DNA of 64,000 nt from Macrostomum lignano (lineage: Eukaryota), in the NCBI GenBank assembly GCA_002269645.1, contig NIVC01002969.1, positions 1 to 64,000 on the forward strand, given 5' to 3'. A model generated the notes under the pieces. It worked only from the letters and a program-made list of their open reading frames with translations. It was not told the origin of the DNA and did not search any database. Positions within the stretch are counted from its first letter, which is position 1; every line of letters begins with the position of its first letter. Below, piece by piece: positions 19,679 to 56,294 of this stretch. The translations under genes were made by a program, and so were the position numbers.

Positions 19679-19807
19679 GTTTAAGCTCTGCTTTTGTGAG
19701 TGTAGATTTAGAGAAAGAAGAGTTTCTTTACTGTACTGTAACCGTCTTACATCTCTATATGGGTTTGAAATCGAATCAAGACTTGGTTTTTCAGTTTCTG
19801 AGGGGAG

Positions 19808-26895: not shown

Positions 26896-30612
<3,717 letters not shown>

Positions 30613-31466
30613 GTCGTCAGAGACGTCAGAGGATGCAAGCAGCGACGATATCAGGGGAATCAGGAGTTCAGCTGCTAAATGAATTGTCTGCATGATTTCT
30701 AGTTCAGTTTCTGCTCTTGTTTTGCGATTTTGATCCCTCATTGCTGGTGCAATGCCCGCAGAAGTTAAACCTTGCTGGTCTGCGCTAATCCCAGGGCTGA
30801 CGTTCAGTGTGCCATTTTTATTCATCAGTCAGTCATTCTGCTTCTTGCCCTGCGCACCTTCGGCGAGCACTTGGTTATCGAGCCGTGCCGGAGACACTTG
30901 AGATTCTGTAAGCCAAGTTGGCTCTGCTATTCATTGCTTTACCATTACGCTTAGCGATTATGCTAATCAGTTATTATGAGACACTGTGATTTCCGCTAAT
31001 TCCCTTTTTGATTCCCCTATTTTGCTACTGTTAATCACTGACGTTATCTTGTTGCCCTGCGCAGTTGTTTTACTTGGCTTCGAACTGTTATTTTAGTGTA
31101 CATATCCTACAGGTAGATTGTAGCTTCGTTGGTGATCGCAGTTTACGACTAGTCTGCGTCTCAACTATTTTTAGCTTTGTTCTTTGTACGCCCACCAGAA
31201 AGGTTTTATATCTGCACTTTTATATCTTATATCTTCACAGAACAGTTCGTTGTGCACAAATATTCTATTCCAGCTAAGTATTTCCCTTTGATTATTTTAT
31301 CATTGCAAAGGTTTAAAAAAATAGACAGAATAGCGGAGTGCCATTCCGGCAACTCCTTCAGTTCAATAGCTGATTTGAGTCCTCTTCAGTCTTGCTTTAT
31401 TTTCACTTAGTTTCATTTGGGCTTCGCAGGCGGTTCAGCTTAACTGCGGTGCAGAGGCAGGCATAC

Positions 31467-33534
31467 TCAGTCGAACTCGGCGCCCAGCGCGATGCTCACT
31501 TCGCCAGACTCAACTTCTGTCTCGTGAATCCACTTTGACGTCTTTAAAGCAACTGAAAACATTGGTGGGAAAATTTAGCCATGAACCTGGAAAACTGTAG
31601 CAGCCAACTAAATGTTGTAGCGACTCACTCATGTCCCCGGGTCTCAGCAAGACTTGATACACATGCTGGCAGGTATAGTAGCAATTCAGAGGCGGCCTCA
31701 GGCGCCACCGCTTGCTGCCCTGAATCTGCGCCTGCCACGTGTTGTAGTACACTGCGTCGATCTGCGTGGGGTTCAGGTTTTTTACGTTAGTTTTTGTACT
31801 TGGTTCGGTTTCTGGACTAGTTGGTTCAGGTTCGGTTTCTGGACTAGTTGGTTCAGGTTCGGTTTCTGGACTAGTTGGTTCAGGTTCGGTTCCGGGACTA
31901 GTTGGTTCAGGTTCGGTTCCGGGACTAGTTGGTTCAGGTTCGGTTTCTGGACTAGTTGGTTCAGGTTCGGTTTCTGAACTAGTTGGTTCAGGTTCGGTTC
32001 CGGGACTAGTTGGTTCAGGTTCGGTTCCGGGACTAGTTGGTTCAGGTTCGGTTTCTGGACTAGTTGGTTCAGGTTCGGTTTCTGAACTAGTTGGTTCAGG
32101 TTCGGTTCCGGGACTAGTTGGTTCAGGTTCGGTTCCGGGACTAGTTGGTTCAGGTTCGGTTTCTGGACTAGTTGGTTCAGGTTCGGTTTCTGGACTAGTT
32201 GGTTCAGGTTCGGTTACGGGACTAGTTGGTTCAGGTTCGGTTTCTGAACTAGTTGGTTCAGGTTCGGTTCCGGGACTAGTTGGTTCAGGTTCGGTTCCGG
32301 GACTAGTTGGTTCAGGTTCGGTTTCTGGACTAGTTGGTTCAGGTTCGGTTTCTGGACTAGTTGGTTCAGGTTCGGTTTCGGGACTAGTTGGTTCAGGTTC
32401 GGTTTCGGGACTAGTTGGTTCGGGTTTATTTCAGGACTAGTTGGTTCAGCTTCGGTTTCGTGCTGGCTGGTTCTGGCTTGGTTTGATTTCTGTTTAAAAT
32501 GCGATATCTGTTCTTTCGAATGCATTAATAAATTTTGTCAGCTGCACAGAAATAAAAAGCCAAATATTTGAAACTTTCCAAAGTAAATATCGATCGTAAT
32601 TCCTATCACGGTTGTGTACCTAAGATCAATTTTAGGCTAAGAAAGGCGTTGAAAATATAATCGCCCTAAAGACTCCAGAATAGCAGGTCTTTGTGCTCAC
32701 ATGGGCTGGCGCGCCCTTGCCGGGTCCGCCGACGAAAATCCACTCAGTGGCGCCGTGTTCGCTGTCGCTGGCCAGAAATCCCGGCCTTTTGTAGAGCCGC
32801 CTCAGCCTCCGAGCAACTCGCTGGTTGCAGACATTCCTGCAAGCGCGTGTTAGTGGCTGTTTGATGCTGACAATTCTCAAGGCCTGCAGTTAATATGCGA
32901 GCACCTTGAAGTGCAAATGCAGTCGTGTCACTCACCAACCGACGTACCAGGAGTCACGGCTCAGATTTTCCGGCTCCTTGGACCAGCGGAAAAAGTGGCC
33001 AAGCGTTGGGAACTGGTTCTTGTAGTCGAACATCTGGCAGAGCACGCTGGCCCCTCCACCGCCGCCCTCTGGGTGGCCTTCGTTGGTCCACCGGCCCCGC
33101 CGGGCCTCCCGATAGAGCCGGCGCAGCAGGTCGAGGTCGAGGCGCCTGGTCACCGCCGGCCAATCCGCTGCGCCACCGCGGATGACAACAGGCACGTTCC
33201 GCTCCAGGAACTCCGACCGGAACCGGGCTGGGCTGATGGCCTCGGCGCCTGCCTGCAGCTCTGGCAGGCTGGTGAGGTTGGCGCAGTGGCCGCAGTCGGT
33301 GTCGGGCTGCAGTAGCATCTGCACCCAACCCGACTGCGCCGCCAGCAGACAGGGTGCGCTGTACGGGTCGCTGCCGGGGTTCGCCCGCCTCGCCCAGGCG
33401 GCCATGGCGGAGTCAAAAAGTTCGGCCGCCCATCCTGGCGACTCCGGCTCAGGAGGCCAGGCGTGGCGGCCGAACAACAGCAGCAGCAGCAGAGCCAGTA
33501 GACCCCCGCCTACCTTTTTGGCAGTACCTGGCAT
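31467..33534 (-). CDS. N-terminally anchored JmjC/cupin-like protein; exons 33534-32936, 32836-32701, 31761-31629, 31552-31467 (317 aa)
   Basis: Hydrophobic LLALLLLLLF near N-terminus; PVVIRG.A.DW, CQMFDYK, WYVGW, WIFVGGPG.GAPAH|ID, WQAQIQG.K.W.L.PP, LRPGD, KWIHET...SIALGAEFD*; junctions GT-AG and in phase (954 nt). Confidence 0.85.
31797..32457. repeat. 27-bp minisatellite (~24 copies) in intron 2 of the JmjC-like gene
   Basis: GGACTAGTTGGTTCAGGTTCGGTTTCT. Confidence 0.95.
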
Positions 33535-34226
33535 CGCATGAGTTGGCGCGGCTGCTTGCAGTCTTCCGCACAGAGTATTATTTATACCTTGAGTTCAGGT
33601 CGACCAGGCTGCATCACGCAACAGGCCAGTTTCCTGGAGCCGGTCAGAGTTCTGCTGGTCGCGTCAATCAGGTCTACCAGAAATCAGCGAATTTCCGCCG
33701 TTTGTGGCTTTCTGAAAGCCCACAGGCTGGGACTCGCCATGCTGGCATTTCCTAGCGTGCATGAACGGATAAGAAATGGCCTCATTATTTGACTCTATTT
33801 TGCTCCCCTGACGAATCGATGCCTTCAAATTGGCAAAGCTCGTGCTGTACAGATTAGATTTGGCTTTTAGCTTGATGATAAATGAACAAGGTGTTAGTAT
33901 GCTCATATAGTGGTTTGAGGTGTAAAGGTTGTGTTGATATCGCTTGTGCATCTGTACTCATATATTCGTACTCATAATCGCCTATTGCACCTGCCCCTTC
34001 ACGCCAGTGCCTTTATCGCCTCTACGAGCTATTCTGATGTGTTTAATTGTACATTGCAAGTAAGTCATTCACCCTTAGCACCCCGCTAAAGCCTTGCGTC
34101 AAGCCCACTTTCTATTAAATTTAAAATCAAAAACCTGGCACACAAAGTACTTCCCCTTCTCTCCAGTTATGAAAAATAAATGCAGGTTTGGCTAAGCAGC
34201 AATCGGTCATGAGCCTCCACTACATA

Positions 34227-34655
34227 AAATCTCTGACGAGTCACAACAGTTCTCGAAATTTTCGCATGCCCATGCCCATGTGATCATATTAGCTACCGTT
34301 ACCTTACGTGAAATCTCTGACGAGTCACAACAGTTCTCGAAATTTTCGCATGCCCATGCCCATATGATCATATTAGCTACCGTTACCTTACGTGAAATCT
34401 CTGACGAGTCACAACAGTTCTCGAAATTTTCGCATGCCCATGCCCATATGATCATATTAGCTACCGTTACCTTACGTGAAATCTCTGACGAGTCACAACA
34501 GTTCTCGAAATTTTCGCATGCCCATGCCCATATGATCATATTAGCTACCGTTACCTTACGTGAAATCTCTGACGAGTCACAACAGTTCTCGAAATTTTCG
34601 CATGCCCATGCCCATATGATCATATTAGCTACCGTTACCGTACATGAAATCTCTT
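34227..34655. repeat. 84-bp minisatellite, 5 full copies
   Basis: Copies start 34227, 34311, 34395, 34479, 34563; partial at 34647. Confidence 0.95.
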
Positions 34656-35211: not shown

Positions 35212-38200
35212 ATGCTGCGGATTTTGCTGCTGCTGCTGCCGCTGCTTCTGCTGCAGCAGCTGCTTGGAGTCAGCGGCCAGGCGCAGGAAGGTGAGGCAAT
35301 CGGCAAGATTTCCCCCGAGTAAAATCGCTAAAGCTTGCTTAATAATATGAGAACTTAGAGTTTCTCATCATAGGACAGTATCTCTCACGAGCTCACAGCT
35401 TTAAATTAAAATCTGAAACTCTCGAACTAAGTGCCAGAGTCTTGAACTAGCTCTAACTCTCGAACTAAGTGCCAGAGTCTTGAACTAGCTCTAACTCTCG
35501 AACTAAGTGCCAGAGTCTTGAACTAGCTCTAACTCTCGAACTAAGTGCCAGAGTCTTGAACTAGCTCTAACTCTCGAACTAAGTGCCAGAGTCTTGAACT
35601 AGCTCTAACTCTCGAACTAAGTGTCAGAGTCTTGAACTAGCTCTAACTCTCGAACTAAGTGCCAGAGTCTTGAACTAGCTCTAACTCTCGAACTAAGTGT
35701 CAGAGTCTTGAACTAGCTCTAACTCTCGAACTAAGTGCCAGAGTCTTGAACTAGCTCTAACTCTCGAACTAAGTGCCAGAGTCTTGAATGGAGGCAACCA
35801 GAATCGCAAAGTCTGCGACATCAAAGGTGAAGGTCCTGCTACTTGTCTTCTTTGATGCAAGGGACATGTGTCAAGCAGTATCTGATGAACAGCAATGTTA
35901 CTTTGCTGGAGCAGTTTCCATCCAGGGATTTTTTCCTGAATCTCAGAGAGGGGGCGCAAAGGAACTCTTTTTCCCAACATAGATCATCAGGAGAGCCACA
36001 ACGAAGGAACTTTGGAGTGTTCAGACCACATGCACACAGAACTTCTTAAGGAACGACCTGGGAGAGGTTTATAGAAATTATATGCACTAATTTTTAAACT
36101 TTTCAGAGTCCTACACCTTGGTGATCAAGACTGGCAAAACGGGGACCACCAACAAGGTTTTCTTCAGCCTTAAGGGCCAGATGGGCGATTCCCCACAGCA
36201 GAGCATCAACTTTGATGGCTCCGACAAGCCTATCACGAGCATGTTCACACCGGGAAAGTGAGTGCCTTCACTGGGCTAGGGGAGCATTCCCAAGAGCACA
36301 GCATGTTCACACCGGGAAAGTGAGTGCCTTCACTGGGCTAAGGGAGCATTCCCAAGAGCACACAGGATGTTCACACCGGGAAAGTGAGCCCAGTTCACTG
36401 GGCTAGGGGAGCATTCCCAAGAGCACACAGGATGTTCACACCGGGAAAGTGAGAGCCTTCACTGGGTTAGGGGAGCATTTCCCAAGAGAACATCTGCAAC
36501 AGTCGCTGCCATTCTCTCTCGCAAGGGTGGATGTCATCGAAGGCAAATTTCGCGGAGCCCTGGGCTACATCAGCACAGTGAAGGTCAGCCAGGACTCTTA
36601 CAATGGCTGGGAAATCGAAAGTGTAAGTTGTCTTGCACTCGCTTGTCTGCTTTAAGTAGTTATTTAGGAGTCGCAGTGCTATGCTCATACCCTTTGGCCC
36701 CTTTGGCCACTGAAAGTGCCAGACTGGCGCGACCGAGTTCAGTTTTTGTTGTCTCTCTCAGTTAACAGCCACCTCATCAGTGGTATCGCTGATGTGCAAA
36801 GAACAACCGAAATCGGAAGGCCTTAGAATCCTGTTACACCGCGTTTTATGTTTCTGTTAGCGATGCATCATTATGTTTGCTGCAATTCCACGTGCCCTCT
36901 CAGATTGTGGTCTTCAGTGACACCACCAGGGTGTCCAACAACGAGACCTACATTGTTCGGCAGCCCCAGGACATCAGCTTCAACGGTGAGCAGCGAATTG
37001 TCCTTGCTCCATGCTATGACATTCCCATGACCCATGTGAGCACTGACACTGTGCTGTCCTGCTCCATGCTATGACATTCCCACGACCCATGTGAGCACTG
37101 ACACTGTGCTGTCCTGCTCCATGCTATGACATTCCCATGACCCATGTGAGCACCGACACTGTGCTGTCCTTGCTCCATGCTATGACATTCCCATGACCCA
37201 TGTGAGCACTGACACTGTGCTGTCCTGCTCCATGCTATGACATTCCCATGACCCATGTGAGCACCGACACTGTGCTGTCCTTGCTCCATGCTATGACATT
37301 CCCATGACCCATGTGAGCACTGACACTGTGCTGTCCTGCTCCATGCTATGACATTTCCATGACCCATGTGAGCACTGACACTTTGCTGTCCTGCTCCATG
37401 CTATGACATTCCCATGACCCATGTGAGCACTGGAACTGAGCTGCCCTTGCACCCTGCTATGACATACCATGACCCAATGACTTACAGTGAACTGCGGCTG
37501 GAGCGCCTGGAGCAGCTGGATGACCTGCCAAGGCACCTGCGCCACAGGTGGGGTCCAGATGCGAATCCGCAACCCGAACAGCCCGCCCAGGATCAACTCT
37601 GGCAAAGCGTGCGAGGGCTCCGAGTTCGAGCAGCAGCCCTGCAAACTGGCAATGGACTGTCCGGGTAACACTGGGGTTCGGGTGCTGGGTCCAGTGGCTG
37701 GGAATGCAACTGGGTAGCTGGGAATGCAACTGGGTAGCTGGGCATGCAACCGGGTAGCTGGGCATGCAACTGGGTAGCTGGGAATGCAACTGGGTAGCTG
37801 GGCATGCAACTGGGTAGCTGGGCATGCAACTGGGTAGCTGGGCATGCAACTGGGTAGCTGGGAATTCAACTGGGTAGCTGGGAATTCAACTGGGTAGCTG
37901 GGCATGCAACTTTTAGGAATTATTTAACTACAATTTTTTAGGTTAATTAGACCCTTAATTTTCAAAATTAATAGTACTTCTAAGTAAAAATTGGCTTTTA
38001 TAGTTTAAAAAAATATTAATTTTGTAAGTTAAAGATAATTCTTTTAGAGACCGGGTAGCTGGGCATGCAACTGGGTAGCTGGACATGCAACTGGGTAGCT
38101 GGGCATGCAACTGGGTAGCTGGACATGCAACTGGGTAGCTGGACATGCAACTGGGTAGCTGGACATGCAACTGGGTAGCTGGGCATGCAACTGGGTAGCT

Positions 38201-41200
38201 GGACATGCAACTGGGTAGCTGGACATGCAACTGGGTAGCTGGACATGCAACTGGTTAGCTGGACATGCAACTGGGTAGCTGGACATGCAACTGGGTAGCT
38301 GGACATGCAACTGGGTAGCTGGGCATGCAACTGGGTAGCTGGGCATGCAACTGGGTAGCTGGACATGCAACTGGGTAGCTGGACATGCAACTGGTTAGCT
38401 GGACGTGCAACTGGGTAGCTGGACATGCAACTGCATAGCTGGACATGCAACTGGGTAGCTGGACATGCAACTGGTTAGCTGGACGTGCAACTGGGTAGCT
38501 GGACATGCAACTGCATAGCTAGACATGCAACTGGGTAGCTGGACATGCAACTGCATAGCTGGACATGCAACTTGGTAGCTGGGCATGCAACTGGGTAGCT
38601 GGACATGCAAATGCATAGCTGGACATGCAACTGGGTAGCTGGGCATGCAACTGTATAGCTGGACATGCAACTGGATAGCTGGGCATGCAACTGGGTAGCT
38701 GGACATGCAACTGTATAGCTGGGCATGCAACTGTATAGCTGGACATGCAACTGTATAGCTGGGCATGCAACTGTATAGCTGGACATGCAACTGGATAGCT
38801 GGGCATGCAACTGGGTAGCTGGACATGCAACTGGGTAGCTGGGCATGCAACTGGGTAGCTTGGTAAGTGGTATTTAGTTTGCTTATCCGAGGTATGAAGC
38901 GGTATCAAGTAGCCATATCGGGTATTATTGGGTCGAGTAGACTCAAGCTCAAACAGTAAACACCTGGCCAGGCCGAAACTTATTGAGGTAAAAATTGAGT
39001 CAGAATTTCACTACCAGCATGTACAGAGTCTATCGGCCACTCACTCCACCTGTCAATTTTTACACCCCAAATTCCACAGTGAATGGCAACTGGAGCGACT
39101 GGTCCCCCTGGAGCACCTGCAGCGTCAGCTGCGCCCAAGGCAGCCGCAGCCGCAGCCGCACCTGTACGAACCCGGCGCCCGCAAACGGCGGACTGGACTG
39201 TGTCGGCGCCGCCAGCGACACCGGAGTCTGCACCGAGTCGCCCTGCCCCAGTGCGTCCTCAGATCTTACTCTGACTACTCTGAGTCGCTAGCAAATAACT
39301 CTGTATCTTGTATTGGAAACTGCTTATTATATCTGTCTGGCAGCTCAGACTCTTGTTACCTCATCTGGGATTTCATCTCTGGCAAACACGGAAACCCTGA
39401 TTTGATCAATCCGTTACTTCGCCGGCTGGCCCTGTGGGAAATATAGCTTACTATGTTAGACCAGATGTCGGGTGCCAAAAAGCGGCCAATATTGCAGAAA
39501 GATCGCCCCCAAGAGCTCCCCAAGCCAGCAGATCCGCACCCGCCCCGCAGTCGATGGCCAGTGGGGCAGCTGGTCCCCGTTCTCCGCCTGCAACGCCAGC
39601 TGCGGCCCCGGAGTCCAGACCCGAGCTCGCCTGTGCAACTCGCCAGAGCCGAAGTTCAACGGCAGGAACTGCCAGGGCGACGGAATCGAGCTCAAGACCT
39701 GCGAGCTGACTCCATGTCCCAGTGAGTTGGGCTGGCTTCCATAGCAACCATCACCTACATAAACCTGTTGAGTCACGCTCCCGTAGCATTCACCGCAAAG
39801 TCACAGCCTCACAGCCCCATCCGTGCCCCAACCCGCTGAGTCCGTGGCGCACTCGAAGTGCTGGGGTGGGCGTTGCGTGCAGCAGCCGGAGTCGGGACGA
39901 GGCTTCAGCGCGGCCGTTTCCTCGGCAACTTGTCGCCAGGAATTGTCCGAGGTAAGGTGCCGAATTTATCTCAGTAAATCTCTGTGTGCATGAATAAGCC
40001 TGCTTGAGCTGTGATTGGATAAAAGCTTTCAAATTTATTCAGCGCAAACTCATTTATACGATTTTTTTTAGCGTTAAAAAGATATATAGAATCGCTTCAA
40101 CACTAAAGCTCGTATTTCACAAATCCTTTCTTCCATGAGCTGCTGGCCCTCAATATGGACTGCAGCTTCAGTAGCTCTGGCACAAATCCTCACGCAATTC
40201 TGTCCATGAGCTGCTGGCCCTCAATGTGGACTGCAGCTTCAGTAGCTCTGGCACAAATCCTCAAGCAATTCTGTCCATGATCTGCTGGCCCTCAATGTGG
40301 ACTGCAGCTTCAGTAGCTCTGGCACAAATCCTCACGCAATTCTGTCCATGAGCTGCTGGCCCTCAATGTGGACTGCAGCTTCAGTAGCTCTGGCACAAAT
40401 CCTCAAGCAATTCTGTCCATGATCTGCTGGCCCTCAATGTGGACTGTAGCTTCAGTAGCTCTGGCACAAATCCTCAAGCAATTCTGTCCATGATCTGCTG
40501 GCCCTCAATGTGGACTGCAGCTTCAGTAGCTCTGGCACAAATCCTCACGCAATTCTGTCCATGATCTGCTGGCCCTCAATGTGGACTGCAGCTTCAGTAG
40601 CTCTGGCACAAATCCTCAAGCAATTCTGTCCATGATCTGCTGGCCCTCAATGTGGACTGCAGCTTCAGTAGCTCTGGCACAAATCCTCAAGCAATTCTGT
40701 CCATGATCTGCTGGCCCTCAATGTGGACTGCAGCTTCAGTAGCTCTGGCACAAATCCTCACGCAATTCTGTCCATGAGCTGCTGGCCCTCAATGTGGACT
40801 GCAGCTTCAGTAGCTCTGGCACAAATCCTCAAGCAATTCTGTCCATGATCTGCTGGCCCTCAATGTGGACTGCAGCTTCAGTAGCTCTGGCACAAATCCT
40901 CAAGCAATTCTGTCCATGATCTGCTGGCCCTCAATGTGGACTGCAGCTTCAGTAGCTCTGGCACAAATCCTCACGCAATTCTGTCCATGATCTGCTGGCC
41001 CTCAATGTGGACTGCAGCTTCAGTAGCTCTGGCACAAATCCTCAAGCAATTCTGTCCATGATCTGCTGGCCCTCAATGTGGACTGCAGCTTCAGTAGCTC
41101 TGGCACAAATCCTCACGCTTCACTTTAACAGTCATGAACAGAGCCGGAACGGCTGCACCAGGCTATGGCAGTCCCAACAAGAACTGCAACCCGACAGCCC

Positions 41201-44200
41201 GACATTCCAGACCAGCTTTACTTTATTGCTAATGGCTGGCGACTGAGATGCCCACTCCAGAGCCGTCTGCATCTCCAGATTTCCTCGCAATCGAACTCAC
41301 AGGTTCACAAAGTTACACAGTTCTGTGGCATTCTGTTGGTGCGTGGGTGCGTCTGAGAGCAACTCTGCGATTTTAATTTGCATAAATTAAGCCTGGCTGC
41401 CACCTCAGATTCAAGAGACAAAATGCCATCTTGATACCAGATTGCTCTTCGCCATAAGTCAGCGGATCCTCAGCTGATGGCCCATCAGTCAGCGGATCCT
41501 CAGCTGATGGTCCATCAGTCAGCGGATCCCAGACAATAGCCAATGAGTTGTTTCCCATATCGCCCAAAGCAAATTCGATGAACATCCCGCAGTCGACGGC
41601 GGCTGGTCCAGCTGGGGCGAGTTCTCCAGCTGCTCGAGCTCGTGCGGCGACGGCATCGAGATTCGAAACCGGCCCTGCACGAACCCGCCTCCCCAGTTCG
41701 GCGGGCGGCCTTGTCCGGGGAGCGCCAACGACTCGAGGTCATGCAATCTCAGGCCATGCCCGAGTGAGTGGCTAGGGGCTTCCCAGCAGTTTAATGGTGG
41801 TCGAATATCGGGATTTAATAAAAACTGCACGAGAGACCCGCAGAGACTCGAGATGTCCAATCCCGAACCCCTAAACCTTCCAGTTGACGGCCAATGGAGC
41901 GAGTGGTCCACCTTCTCTGGGTGCAGTCGCAGCTGTGGCTCCGGCAAGCAGTGGCGCGGCCGCCAGTGCGCCAGCCCGGTCCCGCAGTTTGGCGGTCTCG
42001 ACTGCCCCGGCGGAGCCAACGAGACCCGCGAGTGCAACACCAACCCTTGTCCAGGTGGGTGCTTCGCGTGGAACCAGTTTCCTGATCGAAGACTTAAATC
42101 CAGAGAAAGTAGAGAGAATCATTCGAGTAAAAGGGTTGACCACGTGTCCATTGGCAAGATAATATGACTTTTAGACTCTCTCAGCAGCCAGCCTCCCTGC
42201 ATCCGACGCCATTTTCTTGAACTTCCCTGCAGTGGACGGCGGCTGGTCTGCCTGGTCCGCCTTTGCTGACTGCAGCGTCACCTGCGGCAACGGCAGCCAC
42301 AGCCGCCAGCGCAGCTGCAGCAGCCCGGAGCCGCAGTTCGGAGGCCTCAACTGTTCTGGCAAGGCGGTCGAATTCGGCAACTGTAACCCCCGACCTTGCC
42401 CGAGTGAGTGACAGCCGCTGCTCTCCCTGCCAGCCCCACCTGCCCGAGTGAGTGACAGCCGCTGCTCTCCCTGCCAGCCCCACCTGCCCGAGTGAGTGAC
42501 AGCCGCTGCTCTCCCTGCCAGCCCCACCTGCCCGAGTGAGTGACAGCCGCTGCTCTCCCTGCCAGCCCCACCTGCCCGAGTGAGTGACAGCCGCTGCTCT
42601 CCCTGCCAGCCCCACCTGCCCGAGTGAGTGACAGCCGCTGCTCTCCCTGCCAGCCCCACCTGCCCGAGTGAGTGACAGCCGCTGCTCTCCCTGCCCAGCC
42701 CCACCTGCCCGAGTGAGTGACAGCCGCTGCTCTCCCTGCCAGCGACAGCGTGAGTGACAGCGGCAGGGGGAGCAGCGGCTATCACTCACTCGGGCAGGTG
42801 GGGCTGGGCAGGGAGAGCAGCGGCTGTCACTCACTCGGGCAGGGTGGGGATGGGTCTGGCTGCTCACTTCTTCATCGTACAGCTCACCTCCTCACATATT
42901 TGACCTTTTAATTAGCTTTCGAATCGACCAGAATTTATTACGAGCATTGAGTGCATGGTCCGGATGCGCAGTAATTAATGAGCCGTGGCAGCACTGGACA
43001 ACCTATGCACTCGCAATGGCAATTAAATCTCAGTGCTTCAAGCCAAGCCATGCCATGGAACTCTCCCGCAGTTGACGGAGCCTGGACCAGCTGGTCTGAC
43101 TACTCGGCCTGCTCGCTCACCTGCGGCAGGGGTCGCCAGTGGAGCCAGCGGAGCTGCAGCGCTCCGGAGCCGCAGTTCGGCGGGAAAAACTGCCCAGGAA
43201 ACTCCACCCGCGACCGAGCCTGCCTGGTCACTGAGTGCCCCGTGGACGGCCTCTGGGGATCCTGGGGCGCCTGGGAGAGCTGCAGCGTCACCTGCGGCAG
43301 CGGCACCGCCTGGAGGAGGCGGCACTGCGACTCCCCGGAGCCTCAGTTTGGCGGCAGCCGCTGCAGTGGTGCAGGCAACGAGAGCACGCCCTGCCATCCG
43401 GAGGACTGCCCCAGTGCGTGCTGCCGCATGGTCTTGCTTCCCATTTCCCCTGTACTCAGCGCATTTGTGCTTGGGCCATTTTCGCCTATTCCCCGCCCCC
43501 TGGTTTGTCAATTCAGCTTCACCTTGTAGACGCCGTCACCCGTTCACAGTCATCCCGCCGTTTCTTCCATATTATTTTTTTCAATTCTCCGTCATCGCCC
43601 AAATTTCAGTAAACGGCGGCTGGTCGCCCTGGTCGGAATTCACCGCCTGCTCCAGGTCTTGCGGGGGCGGCCAGCGCAGCCGCACTCGGCGGTGCGACTC
43701 CCCGCCGCCCCACGCCGGCGGCGCTGACTGCGTTGGCAGCGGAAGTGACGTCCAGGACTGCGGCACGGACCCTTGCCCAGGTCTGGCTTGTCTCCTACAA
43801 GACTATGCGATATGAGTTATGACCCCGCTGCCAACTATAGCAAGATTTTCCATCTATATTAAGCTGTTGCGTTTGTGTACGGTTGGGTTGCCAGACAGAA
43901 GAATGCCTGCAGGGCCATAGACTTCAGCAGGGGTGTAGCCAGTGAGACAAGGGTGCCGCTGATAAAACTCATGTCACCCCTTCGCAACTGATTTGGAGCC
44001 CATTCACGTCAGTTGTGGTGTCCCCTACCTGCTGATTTGGCCCCCTCACAGAAGGTGAGCCCTTGGTGCCCCTTGATGCTGGCGCCCCCTTGGTGCTAGA
44101 GCCCGTTGTTGATGGTGCTTTAGTGTCTCTGGGAGTATTTTGACCGGGTTGAAATTGCTGTCGCCAAACCGATTGAGGTGTATCGTCCTTCCTGTCTCGT

Positions 44201-47200
44201 TTTTGTTTCTGGTCTGGAAAAAGCGCAAACTTGAAATCATGAGATGCTGAAGAGAATTCACAGATGCATTTTTTATATCCGCCCTCACCCCAGTGAACGG
44301 AGGCTGGGCGCAGTGGAGCGCCTGGGGCAGCTGCTCCAGGAGCTGCGGCTCTGGCCTGGTGCAGCGCAGCCGCGGCTGCACCAACCCTGTGCCCGAATTT
44401 GGGGGCGACGACTGCGCTGGCGAGGCTGTCCAATCCACCGCCTGCGACATCCCCGCCTGCCCCGGTGAGGCCCGCCCTGCCCCCAAACACCGCCTGCGAC
44501 ATCCCCGTCTGCCCCGGTGAGGCCCGCCCTGCCCCCAAACACCACCTGCGACATCCCCGTCTGCCCCGGTGAGGCCCTCCCTGCTCTCTACCGGGTACTG
44601 CTCAGGATGACCCCTCAGCTCCCAGCTGACTTTTAAAGCTGATTAATCGGGTCGTCAGGCTGTTTAACGGCTCTGCAGCCCCGACCCACGAAGCCTCCCG
44701 AGAGTCAAAAAGTCACTGGAATCACAGAAATTCATGAGTTTTTTGTTCCATCTTTTTGTTAACTAGTTTGTTTCTTGATATTCTGTTTGACCTTTTCGTT
44801 CGCAAAGATTTACCTGTCTGCCAATCTGCCTTAAAAGCGAAGTGTAACTGAGCCGCCTGCCAATTCAATTCCATTCCCAATTCAATTCCAGTGAACGGAG
44901 GCTGGGGGGCATGGGGCCAGTGGGGCGACTGCAGCCTTAGCTGCGGTGGCGGCAACCAGCTGCGCTCTCGTCAGTGCGACTCGCCGAGACCGCAAAACGG
45001 CGGAGGAGCCTGCGTTGGCACCGCCAGTGACGGCAGGCAGTGCAACACGGACCCCTGCCCCAGTGAGTGCCCTCGTTTGTCCACACAAATTACTCATGTC
45101 TTCAGCACCACTCGACTGACTTCGGGCTTTCAACTTAGAGTTTTACCTGAAAGCAAGTCACACAGACATCCGCCCTCTCCGACTGCAGTTGACGGTGGCT
45201 GGTCAGCCTGGAGCGAGTGGTCCGGCTGCTCCACCAGCTGCGGTACCGGCAAGTCGACCAGGCAGCGCGGCTGCTCGAGCCCTGTGCCGCAGTTTGGCGG
45301 CCGGGGCTGCTCAGGCAGCGGCTCAGACATTCGCGACTGCCAACAAGGGCCCTGTCCAGGTGCGTTTCCTTGACCACTGACGTGACTTGGTCTTTCATGA
45401 ATATATCTATGTATGAAAATATTGTGGCATGGAATCGCTTCCGATTTTATGTGCTCATCAACAGTGCACGGAGGCTGGAGCGAGTGGACCGAGTTCTCGA
45501 ACTGCTCCGTAACCTGCGGCAATGGAACCCGTAGCCGGAGCCGCAGCTGCAGCAGCCCGGCCCCCCAGTACGGTGGCCGCTTTTGCCTGCCCTGCACCGC
45601 AAACCTTACCTATCCGGAGTCTGCCGACAACGCCTCTGTCTCTTTGGCAACTGTTGTCAAGGACTACGTGAGCGTTGAGGACAATTGCTCCTACAAGGGA
45701 AACTACTATGAGGTGGACGGCGATCTCATAATTTGGGACGATGACGTTCAGTACGCGAACTGCAGCATGGAGCCCTGCATATGTGAGTCACCCCATCGTA
45801 GTTCCTTTGGTCTCCCTATAAATTAGCGATAGCACATTTACTTCGCAACTCAACCCTCTCAATACGCAGCGACCCTTGCTGACAAGGCCAACAGTTTCGT
45901 TGACGAATTCCTCAAAGGCCTGAACAACTCAGGGACCAACAAATCCGTAAGTGCAGGAGAGCCCCTAGTTGCAATTTCGCTCAATTACTTTGCACCTATT
46001 TTGTAATTGCGGCTGCATCTTCTCTCTACGCTGGCCCGCAGGACTCGGAGTCTATGAAGGCCGCACAGGAGATGGTGAACAAGATTACAAACCTGTTGGC
46101 AGATCAGCTGAAGAACGCGGAGGTGGGTAAGCCTGTGATGATCGACGCCAAGGGCGTCTCCGTCGGCGTGTCGAAGGTGAACTCGTCCAACATGGCGGGC
46201 TCCGAGATGAAGTCCGGTGACAAGGGCGGCATCGTGCTGGGCGACGCAGAAGATACCGGGGTCGACGGCCAGGACGCCAGTCTGAAGTTCTCAGCCCTGG
46301 ACCCAAAGACCTTCTTCCCGGGCGCCGACAAGAAGGACCAGTCCGCGGCAGTTGTTTCCCTCAACCTGGCCCAGGGAACTGAAGTGAGTTGGGCTTTTCC
46401 CGGCCATCAGTGCTGAGCCAGAACCCAAAATGTCTCCTGGAAATCTGATTCATTTCATTATGGCAATTGATTTTAGGTGGTGAAGCCAAGCAACGCCTCA
46501 AAGGTGTCGCTAACGCTATCGCTGCCCAACCAGAACCAGGAGACCACCGAGAACCTGCTGCAGCCGGTGGCCATGAAGCGTGGCAAGCGGATGGTGCAGA
46601 AGTTCACGTTCGAGGCGGCGAACACTGCCATCAAGGTATGAGCAGCAGCGAGCCTCACTGCATTGTCTGAAAAATCGTGCTGTGAGACAGTGCGCAGAAA
46701 AGTTAGCTGAGCTCCGATGAAGAAATGAAGAAAAACCGAAAGCTCAGAGAAAAGCCGGGATGCATTAGCGGGACCTTTCAATGAATTTGCCGCCCCGCCC
46801 CTCAGGCGTCACTGGAGCTGCCATCTTCGGACTCCTACCTGATGATGTTCCGAGGCGGCGTCCCGGCCAACTTCAGCAAGCAGGCGAACTTTACGGCTTG
46901 GGTGCACTCAAACGAAACCATGAAGATCGAGACGGACGGCAGCCTGGAGGTCCGGCTGAAGTTCGACACCGCCTTGGCGGCTGCTCGGCGGCGACGGCGA
47001 CGCGAGACAGCCTCGCCGGAGAAGCCACTGACGCTGAGCGTGTTCATCCCCGGTGGCCAGATGGCGGCGGGCAGCGCCGTTTTCATGTCGCTGGAGCTCG
47101 CGGACAACGGGACGGCGGCGGCAGCCTCCGGCAGCAACGTGACGACGGAGTCGGCCAACATGAGCCTGACGGTGGGGGTGGCGTCCATTACGCCGAGGGC

Positions 47201-50200
47201 GTGGAGCGACCTGCTGGGAGGCTGGGTGGACACGGACGCAGAGGTGGCGGAGGAGTCCAGCATCGAAAAGATGGTGTTCAAGAGCAACTTCTTCGGCTCG
47301 TACTCGGGCAAGATGTTCATCGCGCCCAACACCATCAATTTTGCCACCGTTTTCAACAACTTCGCGGGCAAGCTGGCTGAGAACTTTGTCACGCTGTTGG
47401 TGCTGTGTCTCATCATAGGCATCTACGTGGTCGTCTCCGTCTGGATGTGGCGACTGGACCGACAGGAGGCTGCCAATGTAAGTGCCAGCAGGCTGGGACT
47501 ACGGCAAATTTGGATTACTTGCCACTGGGTCTCCGCATGTATAGGCCTTATTAGGCAGTGTCGGTGTTACGTTGAACATATGTGGTACAGTCACACAGTA
47601 TAAATTCCCTTAAGCTGTGCACAAAGGCTGCCTGAGCAATAATAAAGATCTAAGGATGATTTGGATTGCCAGAGTGAGCTAAGGGGACAGTGGCTAAGTG
47701 TTCTATTAACATATTTATTTGAGAGTTAACGCAAGCGCTAGTTTCTCTGAGATGGAAGAGTTTTGTTTTTACTGCAAAATTTATACTTTTTATTTCGAGG
47801 CTATGAGCTAAGTAGCCGATCTTTGTACACACTGCATGCTTCAACAAATGGAATGATTGGCACAGCATGCGGTCTCAACCCAATCCACTCACTCAGCTGC
47901 GGTATGAGCCCCTGGAGGACAACGAGTTCGACAATGACTACACCTTCATCATCAGCGTGTACACCGGGGACGAGTCCGGCGCCGACACCACCTCGAATGT
48001 GTTCATCAACCTTGCGGGCACCTGGGGCTCTTCTGGCCCCAGCCAGCTGTCTGACGGAGTGCGCCAGAACTTCTCCCGCGGCTCCGTCTGCAACTTCGCA
48101 ATGACCACCAGGGCTCCTCTCGGCGAGTTGCGCGGCCTGAAGGTCTGGCACGACAACAGCGGCAAAAAGCCGGGCTGGTTCCTGGAGAAGATACTCATCG
48201 AGGACCTGCAGACCAAGAAGAAGTGAGTTTCTTCTTGTCTTTCTTCCTGTCTAGCTCGTGTTCAGCATGTCCGCCCTTTTGCCGCTTGGCTGGTTTGTTG
48301 CTTTTACATGTAACACTGTGTGGTGGCTTTCAAACTGGATCATCGTTTCAGATGTATCTGTATATGCTCATATTAGTCATGAGTCTCTCCTCGGAACACT
48401 GCGATTCCGGTGGAGGTTCATAGTTTTCGAGGAATGCACAGGAACCCACTAAATGCCCACGAATTTCACTATTTCAGGAAACTTCACATCTTTAAAATGC
48501 TGGCCTATTTTCATAACCCTTAATTCTGGGCATATCAGGGTGTAAAGAAAGCAAAATTAGGGATAGAATTAGGGATAGAAGATGGAAAAATTTATTTGAA
48601 TAGTACAAAGCCTAGCGATTTTTACGCCTTCCACTAAATTCATTGCTAAGTCTACGACAATGCGACAATTTAGCCAATTTAGCACAAGACGTTCAATCTT
48701 GTGCTGAACACAGTCTGAATCTGCAAATTCCTTGCCCAAACTCACCTGCAGCTATGTCTTCATGTGCGATCAGTGGCTGGCTGAAAACAAGTTTGACAGC
48801 CGTACCATGCGGGTGCTGCCCGAGGTGAAGCAGGACCAGCGCTTCCAGGAGATGATGCTGCGGTACAAGGCGGGCGGGGTGGTCAACAAGCACGTGATCA
48901 CGGCGCTTTTCCGCAAGACCGGCCAGTCTAACTACTCCCGGCTGCAGCGCACAGGTGTGGCCAACGCCATGTTCTTCCTCACAATGGTGTGCAATGCCAT
49001 GTGGTACGGCAAGGGAGACGACCTGGATGCCGAGGCTAACTTCAGCATCGACCTCGGCCCGATTTCGGTCACCTGGTTCCAGCTGTACTCTGGCATTCTC
49101 TCCATGGCCATCACCTACCCCTGCATCTTCGCGGCGGCTGAAATCTTCCGCCGAACAAAGAAATGGCAGCGTCGCTGGAGCGAGGACGATGTGGAGAGCA
49201 AGAAGAAGGAAATTCGGCTGCCCAAGGGCTTCCTGGTCATCGGCTGGGGCCTCCTGCTCCTGGGCGTAGGGCTGAGTTTCTTCTTCACCTTCCTTTACAG
49301 CATCGAATGGGGCAAGGAAAAGGCCAACGGCTGGCTCAAGAGCTTCTTCCTGGGAATCCTGCAGTTGGTGGTGGTCACAGATCCCATCTGCCTGCTTATC
49401 GTGTTCGTCGTGGCCAAGAAGATCTTCGGCCAGAAAGAGTCGGAGGAAAACGTCTTCGAGCTGGATGATCTCATTAATGATGATCTCAAGCAGGTGAGGA
49501 GCCGAAACGATATGTTAATTGGTGGTAGTTATAGATAATTTAGTTCCGTATCTCTATTCTTGTAGCTATCTTTGAAAAGCTACAGCAATAAATGCTATTT
49601 GATGTATCTTCCTTCATGCGGCATTTGTCTGTCCTCGCTCCGATCACAACAGTTGCTGCCATCTAAATGGTGCTTCCACAACTCATGCCACACCTTACAC
49701 ACTTTCAGGTCCTGGATGGCACTGAATACGCTCCCCCGGACCCGACTCGGATGGAGGAAATCCGAGCTGAGCGCCGAAACAACCAGAAGATGTCGCAGAC
49801 ATTCACGGACGTGATGTCCTATGTGGTGTACATGTTCCTCCTCGTCGCTCTGGCTTACGACTCACGTGACCAGGTCAGCTTCCGCCAGAACCAAAACTTA
49901 AAAGACCAATTCCTCACGGCCGCGCCAACCCGGTTCAATGACTTTAAGCACGTTTTCGACTGGCTGAATGGCAGCATCGTGCCCAGACTGTACCGAACCA
50001 CCGAATACAACGGCGAACCACTCACTGGAGACCTCAAAGATGCGATCGACACGTGTGACTGCATCAAGCAGGGACCATTCAGGCTGAGGCAGCTGAGGGT
50101 CAATCCACGTGAGTCTAGGCTTTCCTAGTTGAAAATATTTGGGACTTATAGGATCCACTGCTTCTGGGGTTGCCACTGGATGGATTTAGCAGGTGGCTGC

Positions 50201-53200
50201 AGCAACCAGCCCTATCTCCCACAGGCAAGTGCCCGGTAACGTGGCCGTTCAAGGCGTACCCCAGAAATCGTGGATCTGCTCATCGGACTTCTCTCCCCAA
50301 GCGGCGGACCAGGCGGTTTACCGTCCGCTGTGGCTGCCCGACAGCAACGGCTGGGTGCGGAATGCGTCATTGCAAATGCGGGCAAAGTCGCAGATCAAGC
50401 GAATGCGGCCGGATGAAATCGTTCTACAAGCCTTTTGGTACCGTAGCGCTGACTCCATGATGAGCTTCCCGTTCGAGGGCGCCTTCACAACCTACCCGGG
50501 TGATGGCTATGCAGCCACGCTCGGGCTCAACAGTGCTGAGGCCATGTGAGTCCCAAACTCAAACGCTCACGCTGCTGAACGCTGTAGTTTTGTGAAAAGT
50601 GGCGGTGTGAAAAACTTGCAAAAAAGAAGCATATTCTCCCTGGTTTGAAGCGAAATGCATACAAACGCCTTAAAACTTTTTTCGTTTTTTTCCTATCGTG
50701 GACCCACAGGTGGATCATCAACCGGCTGCGGGCCACCAACTGGTTGGACGAGAAGACTCGAGCCATGTTCCTGGAGGGCACGGTGTACAACGCCAACACC
50801 AACCTGTTCACCACCATACAGATCCTGTTGGAGTTCCCGGCCGCAGGCGGAATTCTCACCTACAAGAACGGAGTCCGCACCTACCGCCTGTACAACTACA
50901 CCGGCGGCAAAGGCATCATCCTCATGGCCATGCAGGGCCTGTTCGCCCTCATCTGCCTGTACCAGATCTATCGGGAGACGCGCAGCCTTCTCACGCTACG
51001 ACTCAAGTACTTCGATGACCTGTGGAACAAGATCGAGTTCGTTAACATCCTGCTGTGCATCACAATCATGATCACGTACGGCATCCGCATCAAAATCACC
51101 ATCGACTCCATCGAGCTGATGATGAACAATAGGGGTGAGGGGCGGTGCTCGATTTAGTGAATTTGTTGTGAATTCTATTCCTGGCTGCGTGGCGTTTAAA
51201 CTTTTTGTTTTGCTAGGCGGAAAAACACGCTGTTGTCACAATAACTCAACAGAAGTTCTAAAACAGCACAATTCCATCCCTTCAGCATGCTGTTGTTTCC
51301 CTGCGTCCCTTCAGTCCTCAGTTTAAGTTGTTGCCGTGTTTCATACACTAGTGCTTGGGAAAAAATGCTGGAGAACAACAGACAGCTGTATTAATTCCCT
51401 TTCCCACAGGAATGTACGTGGCTTTCGACAACGTTATTGAGTGGGTAGAGGCAACATGCGTGGCCATGGCTCTAAGTGTGTTCCTCACGATCTTCCGGGT
51501 GCTGAAGTTCTTGGGCTTCAACAAGCACATCGCCATCCTGCTCGCCACCGTGAAGCAGTGCGCCCGCCAGTTGTCCTCGTTCGGCGTCGCCTTCGTGCTG
51601 ATCATGGCGGCCTTCCTGTCGGCTGGCACGATCCTGTTCTCGTTCACCGAGGCCAGCTTTGCCTCCGTGCTGTCCAGCTGCCGTTCGCTCTTCACTACCG
51701 CACTCGGCATTCAGGGTTACACGCAGATCTTCGTCAACAGCCAGGGCACGACTGCCAGCCTCATCTTTTTTGGCGGCTGGTCTTGCCTGGCGGTCTTTTT
51801 TCTGGTGTCAGTCTTCGTGTCCATCCTCACCGACACCTACAGCGTCGTGGTCAGCGACGGCCTCTATAGCTACGATGAGGAGTTTGTCAACCACATGTGG
51901 AGCAAGTGAGCAAAGTGGTCAAGTGCACCTACTCCCGAATGTGTTAAGTGTAGTTGGTAGGAACTGGTCTTCGAAGAGTTTTGGAGCACATGGAATGTTG
52001 TACGCTGGTGGTGTTCATGGATTAGTCCGGTCCATGTGTTAGTGTGCTATGCACTGGTCTGGCGTATTTGCGTGCCAATCTGTTGGGGCTTTAACTACAT
52101 ACTTACAGCATGTGTCGCTAGGCTAACCAGCCTTGATCATTCATTTACCTCATATTGGAATCCAAAATGCACTATGCTGCAAAATCATGCTTTCGAAACT
52201 ACAGATTTATGGGTACTATGGCCAGCATTACGTCAAAGAAGGACGCGCTGGGCGAGGCGCTGCAGAAGAGTGTCAGCGCTGTCAAGCGTCGAATGGGTGA
52301 GCCTAAGTTCAAGGATCAGATGCATAACAATCCGTTGCTTTCACTGCTGCTAATTTCTTTTCGCAGTGACGGAGGAAGACATCGAGATTCAGCTTAATGA
52401 GGACCGGCGCCAGGAGTCCGTTGGCGGGGCCGAGGAGAGCTCTGGCGGCAAAAAGGCAAAAGACAGTAAGCCTTGCTCAGTTCTTGGAGCCGGAGACTAC
52501 TCGTATTTATGGATGTACTAATTAGACATAGCTCGTAAAAGTATCTCCAGCACAGCATGTTAAAAGTTCGCGTTTGCGGGTTCGCTCAAATTAGCAAGTA
52601 TCCACAGAATGACACGTGCAAACATATAAAAAGTGCTCTCGAACATAAAGAGCATGTAACCCTACATCTCCCCTTCTCCCCTGGCCCGCAGTCAACCCCG
52701 GGCTCAAGATGAAGCTAGCGGTGGTAAACAGGGACAAGCCGGAGACCGGAGAAAGCTACGTCTGGACGCCCAAAGAGACGGGAGACGAGGTGCTCGTTGA
52801 CGCCGGCGAGCTGAGCGCCGTTGCCACAGAGGACGCGGAGCCGGACTGGATCCCCAGGTTCAAGTCAACCGCACTGGACTTGCAGCCGCCAGGACTTGAC
52901 GACAGCGGGGCGTCGGCTTTCCGCTTTGACCCGCTGGGCGACAGCGCCAGGTCTGGCCTGCACCTTCTGCCGTCGAAGCCTTCCGCATTGCCACCACTGC
53001 AGGTGAGTTGCTTTGGTGTGCAAAAAGATAGCGATCAGAGTCAATTACAGCTTCGAGCGCGTCCATGAGTGAATCCTTAGCTCAGTGGCAAGGACTCAGA
53101 ACCGGCCGTCCTGGCATTTCGCGTTTAAATCTTACTATTAGACAAACTTACGCTCGTAAAAGCTCACAATAAGGTTTTAGGAGAATGAATTTGGGTGCTT

Positions 53201-53423
53201 CTCTGGATGATTAAAATACTTTAGCATATTCGTACTACATTTATCCCAAAATTGCACTGTAGCTAAAAGTTCAGTAACTGATCAAACTTGAATTTGCTCA
53301 TGCGCTCTGTCTCGACAGGCTGATGAAAAAAAGGCGAAAAAGAAATCCAAGAAGGACAAGCGGCAGCCTGGCTCAGGCTCTGGTACTGATGAGACGCCGA
53401 AGCAGCTAGACTCGGAGATTTAA
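35212..53423 (+). CDS. Polycystin-1-like (PKD1L) 11-TM protein, ~2450 aa, 30 exons: signal peptide, N-terminal PLAT-like domain, 13 TSP1 repeats, GAIN-like region with degenerate GPS, TM1, PLAT, TM2-5, TOP domain, channel TMs, acidic/basic tail; one 1-bp deletion at C-run 50259-50262
   Basis: Exons 35212-35290, 36107-36257, 36526-36622, 36904-36985, 37488-37664, 39080-39250, 39551-39721, 41593-41763, 41884-42054, 42233-42403, 43072-43413, 43610-43780, 44294-44464, 44892-45062, 45189-45359, 45465-45782, 45870-45946, 46042-46383, 46477-46635, 46806-47477, 47897-48222, 48752-49493, 49709-50108, 50225-50545, 50710-51134, 51410-51905, 52205-52296, 52367-52465, 52692-53002, 53319-53423; all GT-AG and phase-consistent after adding 1 nt. 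Motifs APNTINF, SVYTG...ADTTSNV...[62 protein letters not shown]. Confidence 0.92.
35419..35870 (+). mobile_element. Mariner transposase fragment whose first part is amplified as a 38-bp minisatellite (9 full copies + partial, 35419-35788)
   Basis: Last copy reads ...TKCQSLEWR then [15 protein letters not shown], matching mariner ETKxQSxEWR and SKxKVMLxVFFDxxG motifs; lies in intron 1 of the polycystin-like gene. Confidence 0.6.
36241..36490 (+). repeat. 62-65-bp tandem repeat (4 copies) spanning the exon 2 donor of the polycystin-like gene
   Basis: ATGTTCACACCGGGAAA|GTGAG at 36241, 36303, 36367, 36432. Confidence 0.95.
36986..37487 (+). repeat. 55-56-bp minisatellite (~9 copies) making up essentially all of intron 4
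   Basis: GTGAGCACTGACACTGTGCTGTCCTGCTCCATGCTATGACATTCCCATGACCCAT. Confidence 0.95.
37697..38861. repeat. 20-bp minisatellite GGGCATGCAACTGGGTAGCT, split by an AT-rich ~140-bp insert (37912-38051)
   Basis: About 50 copies with position-clustered variants. Confidence 0.95.
40120..41117. repeat. 71-bp minisatellite (~14 copies)
   Basis: TGCTGGCCCTCAATGTGGACTGCAGCTTCAGTAGCTCTGGCACAAATCCTCAAGCAATTCTGTCCATGATC; starts 40141, 40212... Confidence 0.95.
41457..41530. repeat. 30-bp tandem repeat (~2.5 copies)
   Basis: GTCAGCGGATCCTCAGCTGATGGCCCATCA. Confidence 0.85.
42390..42846. repeat. 44-bp minisatellite spanning a TSP-exon donor (8 donors), followed by ~2 inverted copies
   Basis: GTGAGT at 42404, 42448, 42492, 42536, 42580, 42624, 42668, 42713; reverse-complement copies at ~42762-42846. 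Confidence 0.95.
44437..44577 (+). repeat. 52-bp tandem repeat (3 donors) spanning a TSP-exon donor
   Basis: ACCGCCTGCGACATCCCCGYCTGCCCCG|GTGAGG with donors at 44465, 44517, 44569. Confidence 0.95.

Positions 53424-54743: not shown

Positions 54744-56294
<1,551 letters not shown>

Follow-up and report, generated by a model that had tools for sequence, protein, structure and literature searches.

Which kind of receptor is encoded where a polycystin-1-like body is preceded by thrombospondin type 1 (TSP1) repeats and an additional PLAT-like domain, and what would such a protein do? This question is raised by a gene of the flatworm Macrostomum lignano on contig NIVC01002969.1 (NCBI GenBank assembly GCA_002269645.1), of which positions 1 to 64,000 of the forward strand were analysed. 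This stretch of 64,000 nucleotides is called the window in the following. We regard it as probable that the gene encodes Macrostomum PKD1L-2, a polycystin-1-like protein with 11 transmembrane segments (TM), an assessment that covers its orthology to a planarian protein, an uncleaved stalk, a ciliary mechanosensory role and a force-collecting ectodomain.

An exhaustive HMMER search with residues 929-1834 of the product against 1.84 billion representatives returned 4514 proteins. The best PKD1-like match outside Macrostomum was PKD1L-2 of Schmidtea mediterranea (AKN21725.1, UniProt A0A0H3YFF8), with 708 bits and 43% identity. The alignment covers query positions 8-904, beginning with the stalk and extending into the polycystin domain; the next PKD1-like protein had 384 bits. 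Among the 149 best representatives, Schmidtea PKD1L-2 is the only case outside Macrostomum with TSP1 repeats. The N-terminal domains (N-domains) of the two proteins also match each other in a pairwise comparison (E 3e-8). By its best match and its colinear domains, found with the Macrostomum protein as query, the locus is the predicted orthologue of planarian PKD1L-2 in M. lignano. When the whole protein was the query, TSP1-rich proteins such as SCO-spondin-like ones dominated the matches, and a search with the C-terminal 1327 amino acids (aa), which scored word-rich candidates only, gave Macrostomum proteins alone.

The gene model was assembled by hand from the + strand, starting at 35212. 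It extends over 35212-53423 (+) and comprises 30 exons that encode a protein of about 2450 aa, with the start codon at 35212 and the stop codon at 53421-53423. GT-AG borders were found at every junction, the phases are consistent and internal stops are absent from the model. The exons are GC-rich and lie within AT-rich, repeat-laden introns of this eukaryotic window. Two deposited models, PAA54099.1 and PAA82075.1, have the same exon 1 start. The last four exons were placed by tblastn with the tail of a Macrostomum protein of the same 90% cluster, together with splice sites; an older, frame-scrambled model of the same Macrostomum gene was disregarded. The gene has the following features:

35212..35290, + strand: exon 1 with start codon and signal peptide (22 residues followed by QAQE), phase-1 donor GTGAGG.
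36107-36257, 36526-36622 and 36904-36985, + strand: exons 2-4, N-terminal extracellular PLAT/LH2-like domain, aa 27-136, no cysteines (Pfam PLAT, hhalign, AlphaFold2, Foldseek); the reading starts with 29 residues and continues ...WEIESIVVFSD...
37488..45782, + strand: twelve phase-1/phase-1 exons with 13 TSP1 repeats (Pfam TSP_1, motifs, exon boundaries), made up of the next four entries.
37488-37664, 39080-39250, 39551-39721, 41593-41763, 41884-42054 and 42233-42403, + strand: first six TSP1 exons.
43072-43413, + strand: TSP1 exon holding two repeats.
43610-43780, 44294-44464, 44892-45062 and 45189-45359, + strand: TSP1 exons after the two-repeat exon.
45465-45782, + strand: last TSP1 exon, with a truncated 13th repeat and a Cys-containing linker.
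45870-45946, 46042-46383, 46477-46635 and 46806-47477, + strand: exons 17-20, stalk of about 400 residues and TM1 (GPS-region alignment, hhalign).
Within exons 17-20, + strand: FKSNFFG (K at 47280), TM1 (about 47385-47441) and an RRRRRR insert.
47897-48222 and 48752-49493, + strand: exons 21-22, canonical cytoplasmic PLAT and TM2-TM5 (Pfam PLAT at aa 1364-1467, match to PDB 6A70_B, hydropathy).
49709-50108, 50225-50545, 50710-51134 and 51410-51905, + strand: exons 23-26, TM6, polycystin (TOP) domain and channel helices S2-S6 (Pfam).
52205-52296, 52367-52465, 52692-53002 and 53319-53423, + strand: exons 27-30, cytoplasmic C-terminal tail and stop codon (tblastn, splice sites).

On the spliced product, Pfam identified 13 TSP_1 stretches (E 3e-130), two PLAT stretches, Polycystin_dom (E 2e-30) and PKD_channel (E 9e-24); REJ, PKD, Lectin_C and GPS were not found. 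REJ was likewise absent by Pfam from the GPS-proximal stretch of about 400 residues of 10 members of the clade described below and of 11 canonical relatives, a result for which the model may be insensitive to invertebrate sequences or the stretch too short. All 13 TSP1 repeats carry WxxW and Cxx[S/T]CxxG, and six cysteines are present in 12 of them, the 13th being truncated. Repeats 2-13 share 35-60% identity among themselves, repeat 1 only 14-26%.

In a hydropathy scan, ten TM segments including TM1 exceeded the threshold in addition to the signal peptide, with TM2 (about aa 1517-1537) just under it. Ahead of TM1, the only hydrophobic peak is that of the signal peptide at aa 2-20, and nothing hydrophobic was found between aa 20 and 1315. 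Because this interval lacks a hydrophobic segment, the N-domain is placed outside the cell, on the same side as the disulfide-rich and N-glycosylation-rich TSP1 array. The protein has 11 TM in all and a polycystin-1-like body with a cytoplasmic PLAT domain directly after TM1. The unit of TM1, PLAT and TM2/3 matches polycystin-1 in PDB (6A70_B, E 2.5e-28). With this TM1-PLAT unit, 11 TM, a polycystin (TOP) domain inserted between S1 and S2 and the channel region found by Pfam (PKD_channel), the protein is PKD1-like.

The first-pass annotation of this DNA had proposed the order of signal peptide, PLAT-like domain, 13 TSP1 repeats, GAIN-like region and 11-TM body with a second, canonical PLAT after TM1. 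This order is borne out by Pfam, hhalign and hydropathy, with a juxtamembrane stretch of about 340 aa in the stalk that is homologous to GAIN/GPS regions, and the proposed lack of REJ, PKD and lectin domains agrees with Pfam. The interval given, 35212-47477, matches the start codon and the 3' end of the TM1 exon exactly, and the gene itself continues to 53423. A likeness to BAI adhesion GPCRs had also been suggested; it holds for the layout (TSP1 repeats followed by a GAIN-type region) but not for family membership, as a 7TM domain is absent and the GPS is degenerate. Pfam 7tm_2 was not found in the scan of the product, the membrane part of which is a PKD channel body.

Is the N-terminal module a PLAT domain? 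It comprises 110 residues without cysteine and scores 28.1 bits against Pfam PLAT (PF01477; gathering cut-off 23, E 3.6e-6). A BLASTP comparison with the cytoplasmic PLAT of the same protein yielded 32% identity over 77 residues (E 2e-5). The alignment of the Macrostomum and Schmidtea N-domains matched a profile of 22 PLAT domains with 94.7% probability (hhalign, E 6e-8, 95 columns), and the LOXHD1-type PLAT repeats recovered by a hidden Markov model (HMM) of the two flatworm domains are covered nearly end to end. An AlphaFold2 (AF2) model calculated with a 24-sequence alignment has a mean predicted local distance difference test score (pLDDT) of 83.6, with residues 1-90 above 89 and residues 92-110 below 50. 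Its top Foldseek matches are all PLAT domains, namely those of 5-lipoxygenase, 8R-lipoxygenase and pancreatic lipases, at a TM-score of 0.65.

Several observations weigh against this assignment. The last approximately 20 residues, with their pLDDT below 50, have no counterpart of the Trp that is conserved in the C-terminal PLAT strand, and Pfam makes no PLAT call on the Schmidtea N-domain. Moreover, canonical PLAT domains were part of the AF2 alignment, which to some extent predetermines the fold obtained. The nearly invariant PLAT positions HD and W are substituted in the N-domain. When the N-domain was compared with PDB sequences by phmmer, PLAT was not found and only chance matches appeared, e.g. 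Spt5/NusG, while single-sequence AF2 of the N-domain and the first TSP1 repeat was uninformative (pLDDT 40). A homology search with the N-domain alone gave no candidates. The module could be a generic beta-sandwich that resembles PLAT and is maybe related to it, but without the lipid- or partner-binding function of a PLAT domain. Such a sandwich would fit the Pfam score, which is just 5 bits over the threshold, the phmmer and single-sequence results, the atypical low-confidence C-terminal strands, the missing HD and W and the lack of a call in Schmidtea. We consider it quite improbable in view of the profile-profile match over 95 columns, the significant pairwise match to the protein's own PLAT, the recovery of LOXHD1-type repeats and the uniform Foldseek result.

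From sequence and model, we conclude that the N-domain is probably a diverged, possibly C-terminally abbreviated, PLAT domain. The earlier PLAT/LH2 reading of residues ~27-135 holds in so far as the domain passes Pfam PLAT and its AF2 model falls among PLAT folds, with the C-terminal strands at low confidence. A duplication of the internal PLAT was considered as the source of the N-terminal one; the intron positions of the two differ, and their mutual similarity is no higher than the similarity to LOXHD1-type repeats. Extracellular PLAT domains are known elsewhere, from secreted lipases and clostridial alpha-toxin. No description of an extracellular PLAT in any polycystin was found in the searchable literature.

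How is this ectodomain joined to the membrane body? In a GPS-region alignment of 85 PKD1-like relatives, CxCNHLT occupies the GPS position in 51. The Macrostomum protein has FKSNFFG at this position; all four GPS cysteines are replaced, and His and Thr are absent. Because the HL|T triad and the four cysteines are lost, the stalk lacks the residues for cis-autoproteolysis. Judging from the missing triad, it is predicted to be unable to self-cleave, so that the ectodomain would stay covalently joined to TM1. A motif of the FKSNF[FL]G type occurs in 13 of the 85 relatives (two of them with R or T for K), which belong to brachiopods, annelids, molluscs and flatworms.

A profile of the stalk from 10 proteins aligned with the GPS-bearing region of 11 canonical PKD1-like proteins with 99.9% probability (hhalign, E 9e-33, 338 columns). 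The Pfam GPS model matched each of the 11 canonical proteins and none of the 10 members of the stalk clade. The GPS feature is degenerate rather than missing. It counts against a GAIN assignment that the stalk profile had no match in PDB. As the PDB, Pfam REJ and Pfam GPS searches were all empty, the term GAIN-like refers to homology with the canonical GPS-bearing region and not to a fold. In that sense the previous wording of a short GAIN-like region was fair, and the degenerate GPS is an addition to it.

A run of six arginines, read within a stretch of 12 residues, lies in exon 20 (about 47010-47030, around aa 1190), where the stalk has an insert specific to Macrostomum. In several clade relatives, SRRLL, KRRRRS or RKRRS is found about 45 residues ahead of the GPS-like motif. 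These arginine-rich sites could be convertase sites that replace GPS autoproteolysis.

Is the gene intact? The product is 100% identical to PAA54099.1 (BOX15_Mlig015709g1, UniProt A0A267DZT8), an M. lignano 'hypothetical protein' whose 1912 aa break off within the polycystin domain. In exon 24, a C run consists of four bases in the window copy (50259-50262) and of five in a second copy of the gene, which breaks the frame in the window copy. The deposited model PAA54099.1 is truncated because of this difference, and beyond the C run the correct frame is open to the stop codon. An exon-24 acceptor at 50203 was dropped; it gave an open frame but was a workaround, and comparison with the second copy placed the start at 50225 and the window one C short.

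The second copy is located on contig NIVC01000496.1 (model PAA82075.1) and is 97-99% identical, introns included. It has all exons, those of the 13 TSP1 repeats included, and shows no other coding indel relative to the window, the exons being otherwise 98.8-100% identical. At least two copies with 97-99% identity are present in the genome. The model PAA82075.1 (2147 aa) leaves out TSP1 repeats 4-6, the exons of which are present in NIVC01000496.1 at 8279-9571 with 99-100% identity; the omission is either exon skipping by the annotation or an isoform.

As assembled, the window copy is frameshifted, which speaks against an intact receptor gene at this locus. It could be a duplicate that lost its function recently, as a pseudogene or null allele, in which case the full receptor would come only from the copy on NIVC01000496.1. 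The one-base deletion that truncates the deposited model and the presence of at least two nearly identical copies agree with this explanation. The deletion is the sole coding indel, however, all other exons are open and match the intact copy, and one missing homopolymer base is typical of long-read assembly indels; we hold an inactivated duplicate to be unlikely. Long-read assemblies introduce single-base homopolymer indels. The run of four C is most simply explained as an assembly homopolymer error, or else as a very young null allele of a gene with an intact second copy. The truncated deposited model is corrected here, and the 'hypothetical protein' receives a name.

An alternative view of the locus is a chimaera, in which a secreted protein is encoded by a gene of its own, made up of exons 1-4 with or without the TSP1 exons, and a shorter PKD1-like gene follows downstream. 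The evidence used here consists of DNA and deposited models, and the skipping of three TSP1 exons in the second-copy model indicates that annotation is imperfect. Phase 1 nevertheless continues unbroken from exon 4 through every TSP1 exon, no stop codon or alternative start separates the modules, and the Schmidtea PKD1L-2 entry has the same order in one reading frame. A chimaera is extremely unlikely on these grounds. That the first exons lie in the same gene, as originally assumed, is also in line with the two deposited Macrostomum models, which join these exons with fitting phases, and with the N-domain, TSP1 repeats and channel of the Schmidtea entry being in one frame.

What would a single receptor of this composition do? 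In planarians, pkd1L-2 is expressed almost only in a ciliated rheosensory organ, alongside pkd2L-1 and pkd2-4, and RNA interference (RNAi) against it lowers the responses to vibration and water flow (PMC11448475). Annelid PKD1-1 is described as founding an invertebrate-specific PKD1 family used in the hydrodynamic startle (PMC6294549). The FKSNFFG clade is a candidate for this family. By analogy with the planarian orthologue, the Macrostomum gene most likely encodes a mechanosensory polycystin subunit. The protein would reside in the cilia of mechanosensory neurons and would be required to turn water flow or vibration into cation influx. As suggested by the orthologue and by what is known of the family, its last six helices may pair with PKD2-like channel subunits to form a cation channel. 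Judging from its anatomy, the long glycosylated, disulfide-stiffened TSP1 array with the PLAT tip may act as a force- or contact-collecting arm, and the uncleaved stalk may pass displacement to the channel body instead of exposing a tethered agonist. Because the stalk is presumably uncleaved, the TSP1 arm would be mechanically continuous with the channel. Two points count against this proposal: the Macrostomum function is transferred from an orthologue with 43% identity, and the tether idea is drawn from anatomy alone.

TSP1 repeats bind matrix and glycosaminoglycan, and PLAT domains bind lipids or protein partners. With such classic binding modules the protein might respond to contact or chemicals instead of flow or vibration, as a receptor for matrix, glycans, lipids or, as proposed for PKDREJ/suREJ, gamete recognition. 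The lectin, kringle, MAM, PAN and CUB heads of clade relatives point to ligand binding as well, and knockdown of planarian pkd1L-1 results in chemosensory defects (PMC11448475). Knockdown of the direct orthologue, which is restricted to the rheosensory organ, gives a mechanosensory and not a chemosensory phenotype (PMC11448475), and we therefore judge a contact or chemical receptor to be a rather unlikely explanation. The first-pass suggestion of lipid or matrix sensing is likewise unsupported, the knockdown phenotype of the orthologue indicating flow and vibration sensing; it may apply to the tip domain, though the orthologue suggests otherwise for the whole receptor.

A bolder version of the mechanosensory reading is that flatworm PKD1L-2 is a tethered mechanosensor of a type undescribed for polycystins. 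A rigid TSP1 array would stand off the ciliary membrane, the PLAT tip would be anchored to a lipid or protein surface, and the uncleavable GPS would permit a direct pull on the channel body. It would extend to a spiralian clade of PKD1-like proteins without GPS autoproteolysis and with swapped heads. We regard this version as doubtful and put it forward as speculation. If true, the spiralian clade would offer a natural way to find out if exposure of a tethered agonist is required in polycystins at all.

Is the protein new? It is not a new receptor class, since its gene models are public and its orthologue is named and studied. The term novel used in the first-pass annotation was overstated in this respect, with gene models in GenBank/UniProt and Smed-PKD1L-2 being a studied mechanosensory gene (PMC11448475). 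The planarian account of PKD domains names REJ, PLAT, WSC and channel, and neither TSP1 nor an extracellular PLAT (PMC11448475). No paper on pkd1L-2 together with thrombospondin and none on the Macrostomum locus tags was found in the searchable literature. Within that literature, the composition of the ectodomain, in particular an extracellular PLAT on a polycystin, appears to be undescribed, as does the GPS cleavage-site loss that is conserved across a spiralian clade with exchanged heads.

The coupling of ectodomain and channel in the PKD1 family is still debated, as is the need for GPS cleavage and a tethered agonist. The flatworm protein and its spiralian relatives keep the full PKD1-like body despite a GPS predicted to be uncleavable, and have interchangeable heads. 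The flow and vibration behaviour of the planarian orthologue provides a clean read-out, and the role of each ectodomain module is directly testable in the animal. Macrostomum is amenable to transgenesis.

Three intron minisatellites of the gene, at 36241-36492, 42389-42743 and 44436-44584, start inside the 3' end of the preceding exon. They have periods of 65, 44 and 52 bp and comprise 3.9, 8 and 2.9 copies. Because each copy repeats the last exon bases and the GTGAG donor, tandem look-alike 5' splice sites arise, and use of a later donor copy would shift the frame, as the periods are not multiples of three. High-identity tandem arrays were also found upstream of the gene and in its introns, at 34227-34654, 35417-35788, 36999-37476, 37697-38860 and 40128-41115 (84 bp x5, 38 bp x10, 55 bp x8.6, 20 bp x58 and 71 bp x14). 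The second gene copy also has the 71-bp array. Other genes and elements in the window are:

2641-4039, - strand: protein kinase gene (Wee1/Myt1-like by eye; Pfam Pkinase E 2e-24).
16234-20512 (-), 21774-22628 (-), 58528-61536 (-) and 62300-64000 (+): mobile elements, including a LINE with endonuclease and reverse transcriptase, a DDE_3/mariner-like transposase remnant, a 1003-aa open Pao/BEL long terminal repeat (LTR) retrotransposon pol and a further reverse-transcriptase element cut by the window end.
26896-30700, + strand: upstream serine/threonine kinase gene with AMPK/SNF1 alpha-like sequence (Pfam Pkinase E 3e-52, one exon) and long peptide-like tandem repeats in its introns and 3' part.
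32935-33594, - strand: cupin/JmjC-like exon with a weak Cupin_8 match below the Pfam cut-off.
54747-56055, - strand: Ras/Rab small GTPase gene (Rab2-like by eye), tail-to-tail directly downstream of the polycystin gene, with a large repeat-filled intron.

How does the protein compare with known systems? In Schmidtea PKD1L-2, the signal peptide, a homologous N-domain, TSP1 repeats, a cysteine-free FKSNFLG, TM1, PLAT, polycystin domain and channel follow one another as in the Macrostomum protein. The planarian protein differs in having four TSP1 repeats and 1814 aa, whereas the Macrostomum protein has 13 repeats and about 2450 aa, and its N-domain is more diverged and falls below Pfam PLAT. RNAi and expression data exist for the Schmidtea gene, while the Macrostomum gene is known here from its sequence.

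Vertebrate polycystin-1 and PKD1L1-3 (PC1 being solved in 6A70 and 8Z6F) share TM1, the cytoplasmic PLAT, TM2-5, the polycystin domain and the six-helix channel-like body, and their GPS-bearing region is homologous to the Macrostomum stalk. Compared to them, the Macrostomum protein is without REJ, PKD-repeat, LRR, WSC and C-lectin domains by Pfam, its GPS is without HL|T and cysteines, and an extracellular PLAT and a TSP1 array are additionally present. The spiralian PKD1-like proteins with FKSNFFG (Lingula, Owenia, Haliotis, Argopecten, Ylistrum) have the same degenerate GPS, a homologous stalk of about 340 aa and a PKD1-like body. Their heads are different, with C-lectin, PAN and CUB/fn3 according to Pfam and kringle-like, MAM-like and mucin-like regions by eye or database name; neither TSP1 repeats nor an N-terminal PLAT occur in members other than the flatworm proteins.

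In BAI/ADGRB adhesion GPCRs, TSP1 repeats precede a GAIN-type region, and the Macrostomum protein has the same layout, with the TSP1 run ahead of a GAIN-type juxtamembrane region. It differs from them in lacking the 7TM secretin-like domain and HormR and in having an 11-TM polycystin body and a degenerate GPS. TSP1 and PLAT also co-occur outside polycystins, as an unrelated, probably protist, secreted metagenome protein (3125 aa) carries about 30 TSP1 repeats and two PLAT domains. For the N-domain itself, the C-terminal domain of pancreatic lipase is a structural neighbour of the model, and LOXHD1-type repeats come closest in sequence apart from the orthologues. Hair-cell mechanotransduction requires LOXHD1. 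In contrast to the lipases and LOXHD1, the Macrostomum protein has one PLAT domain that forms the tip of a receptor ectodomain, with no lipase attached and no intracellular PLAT array.

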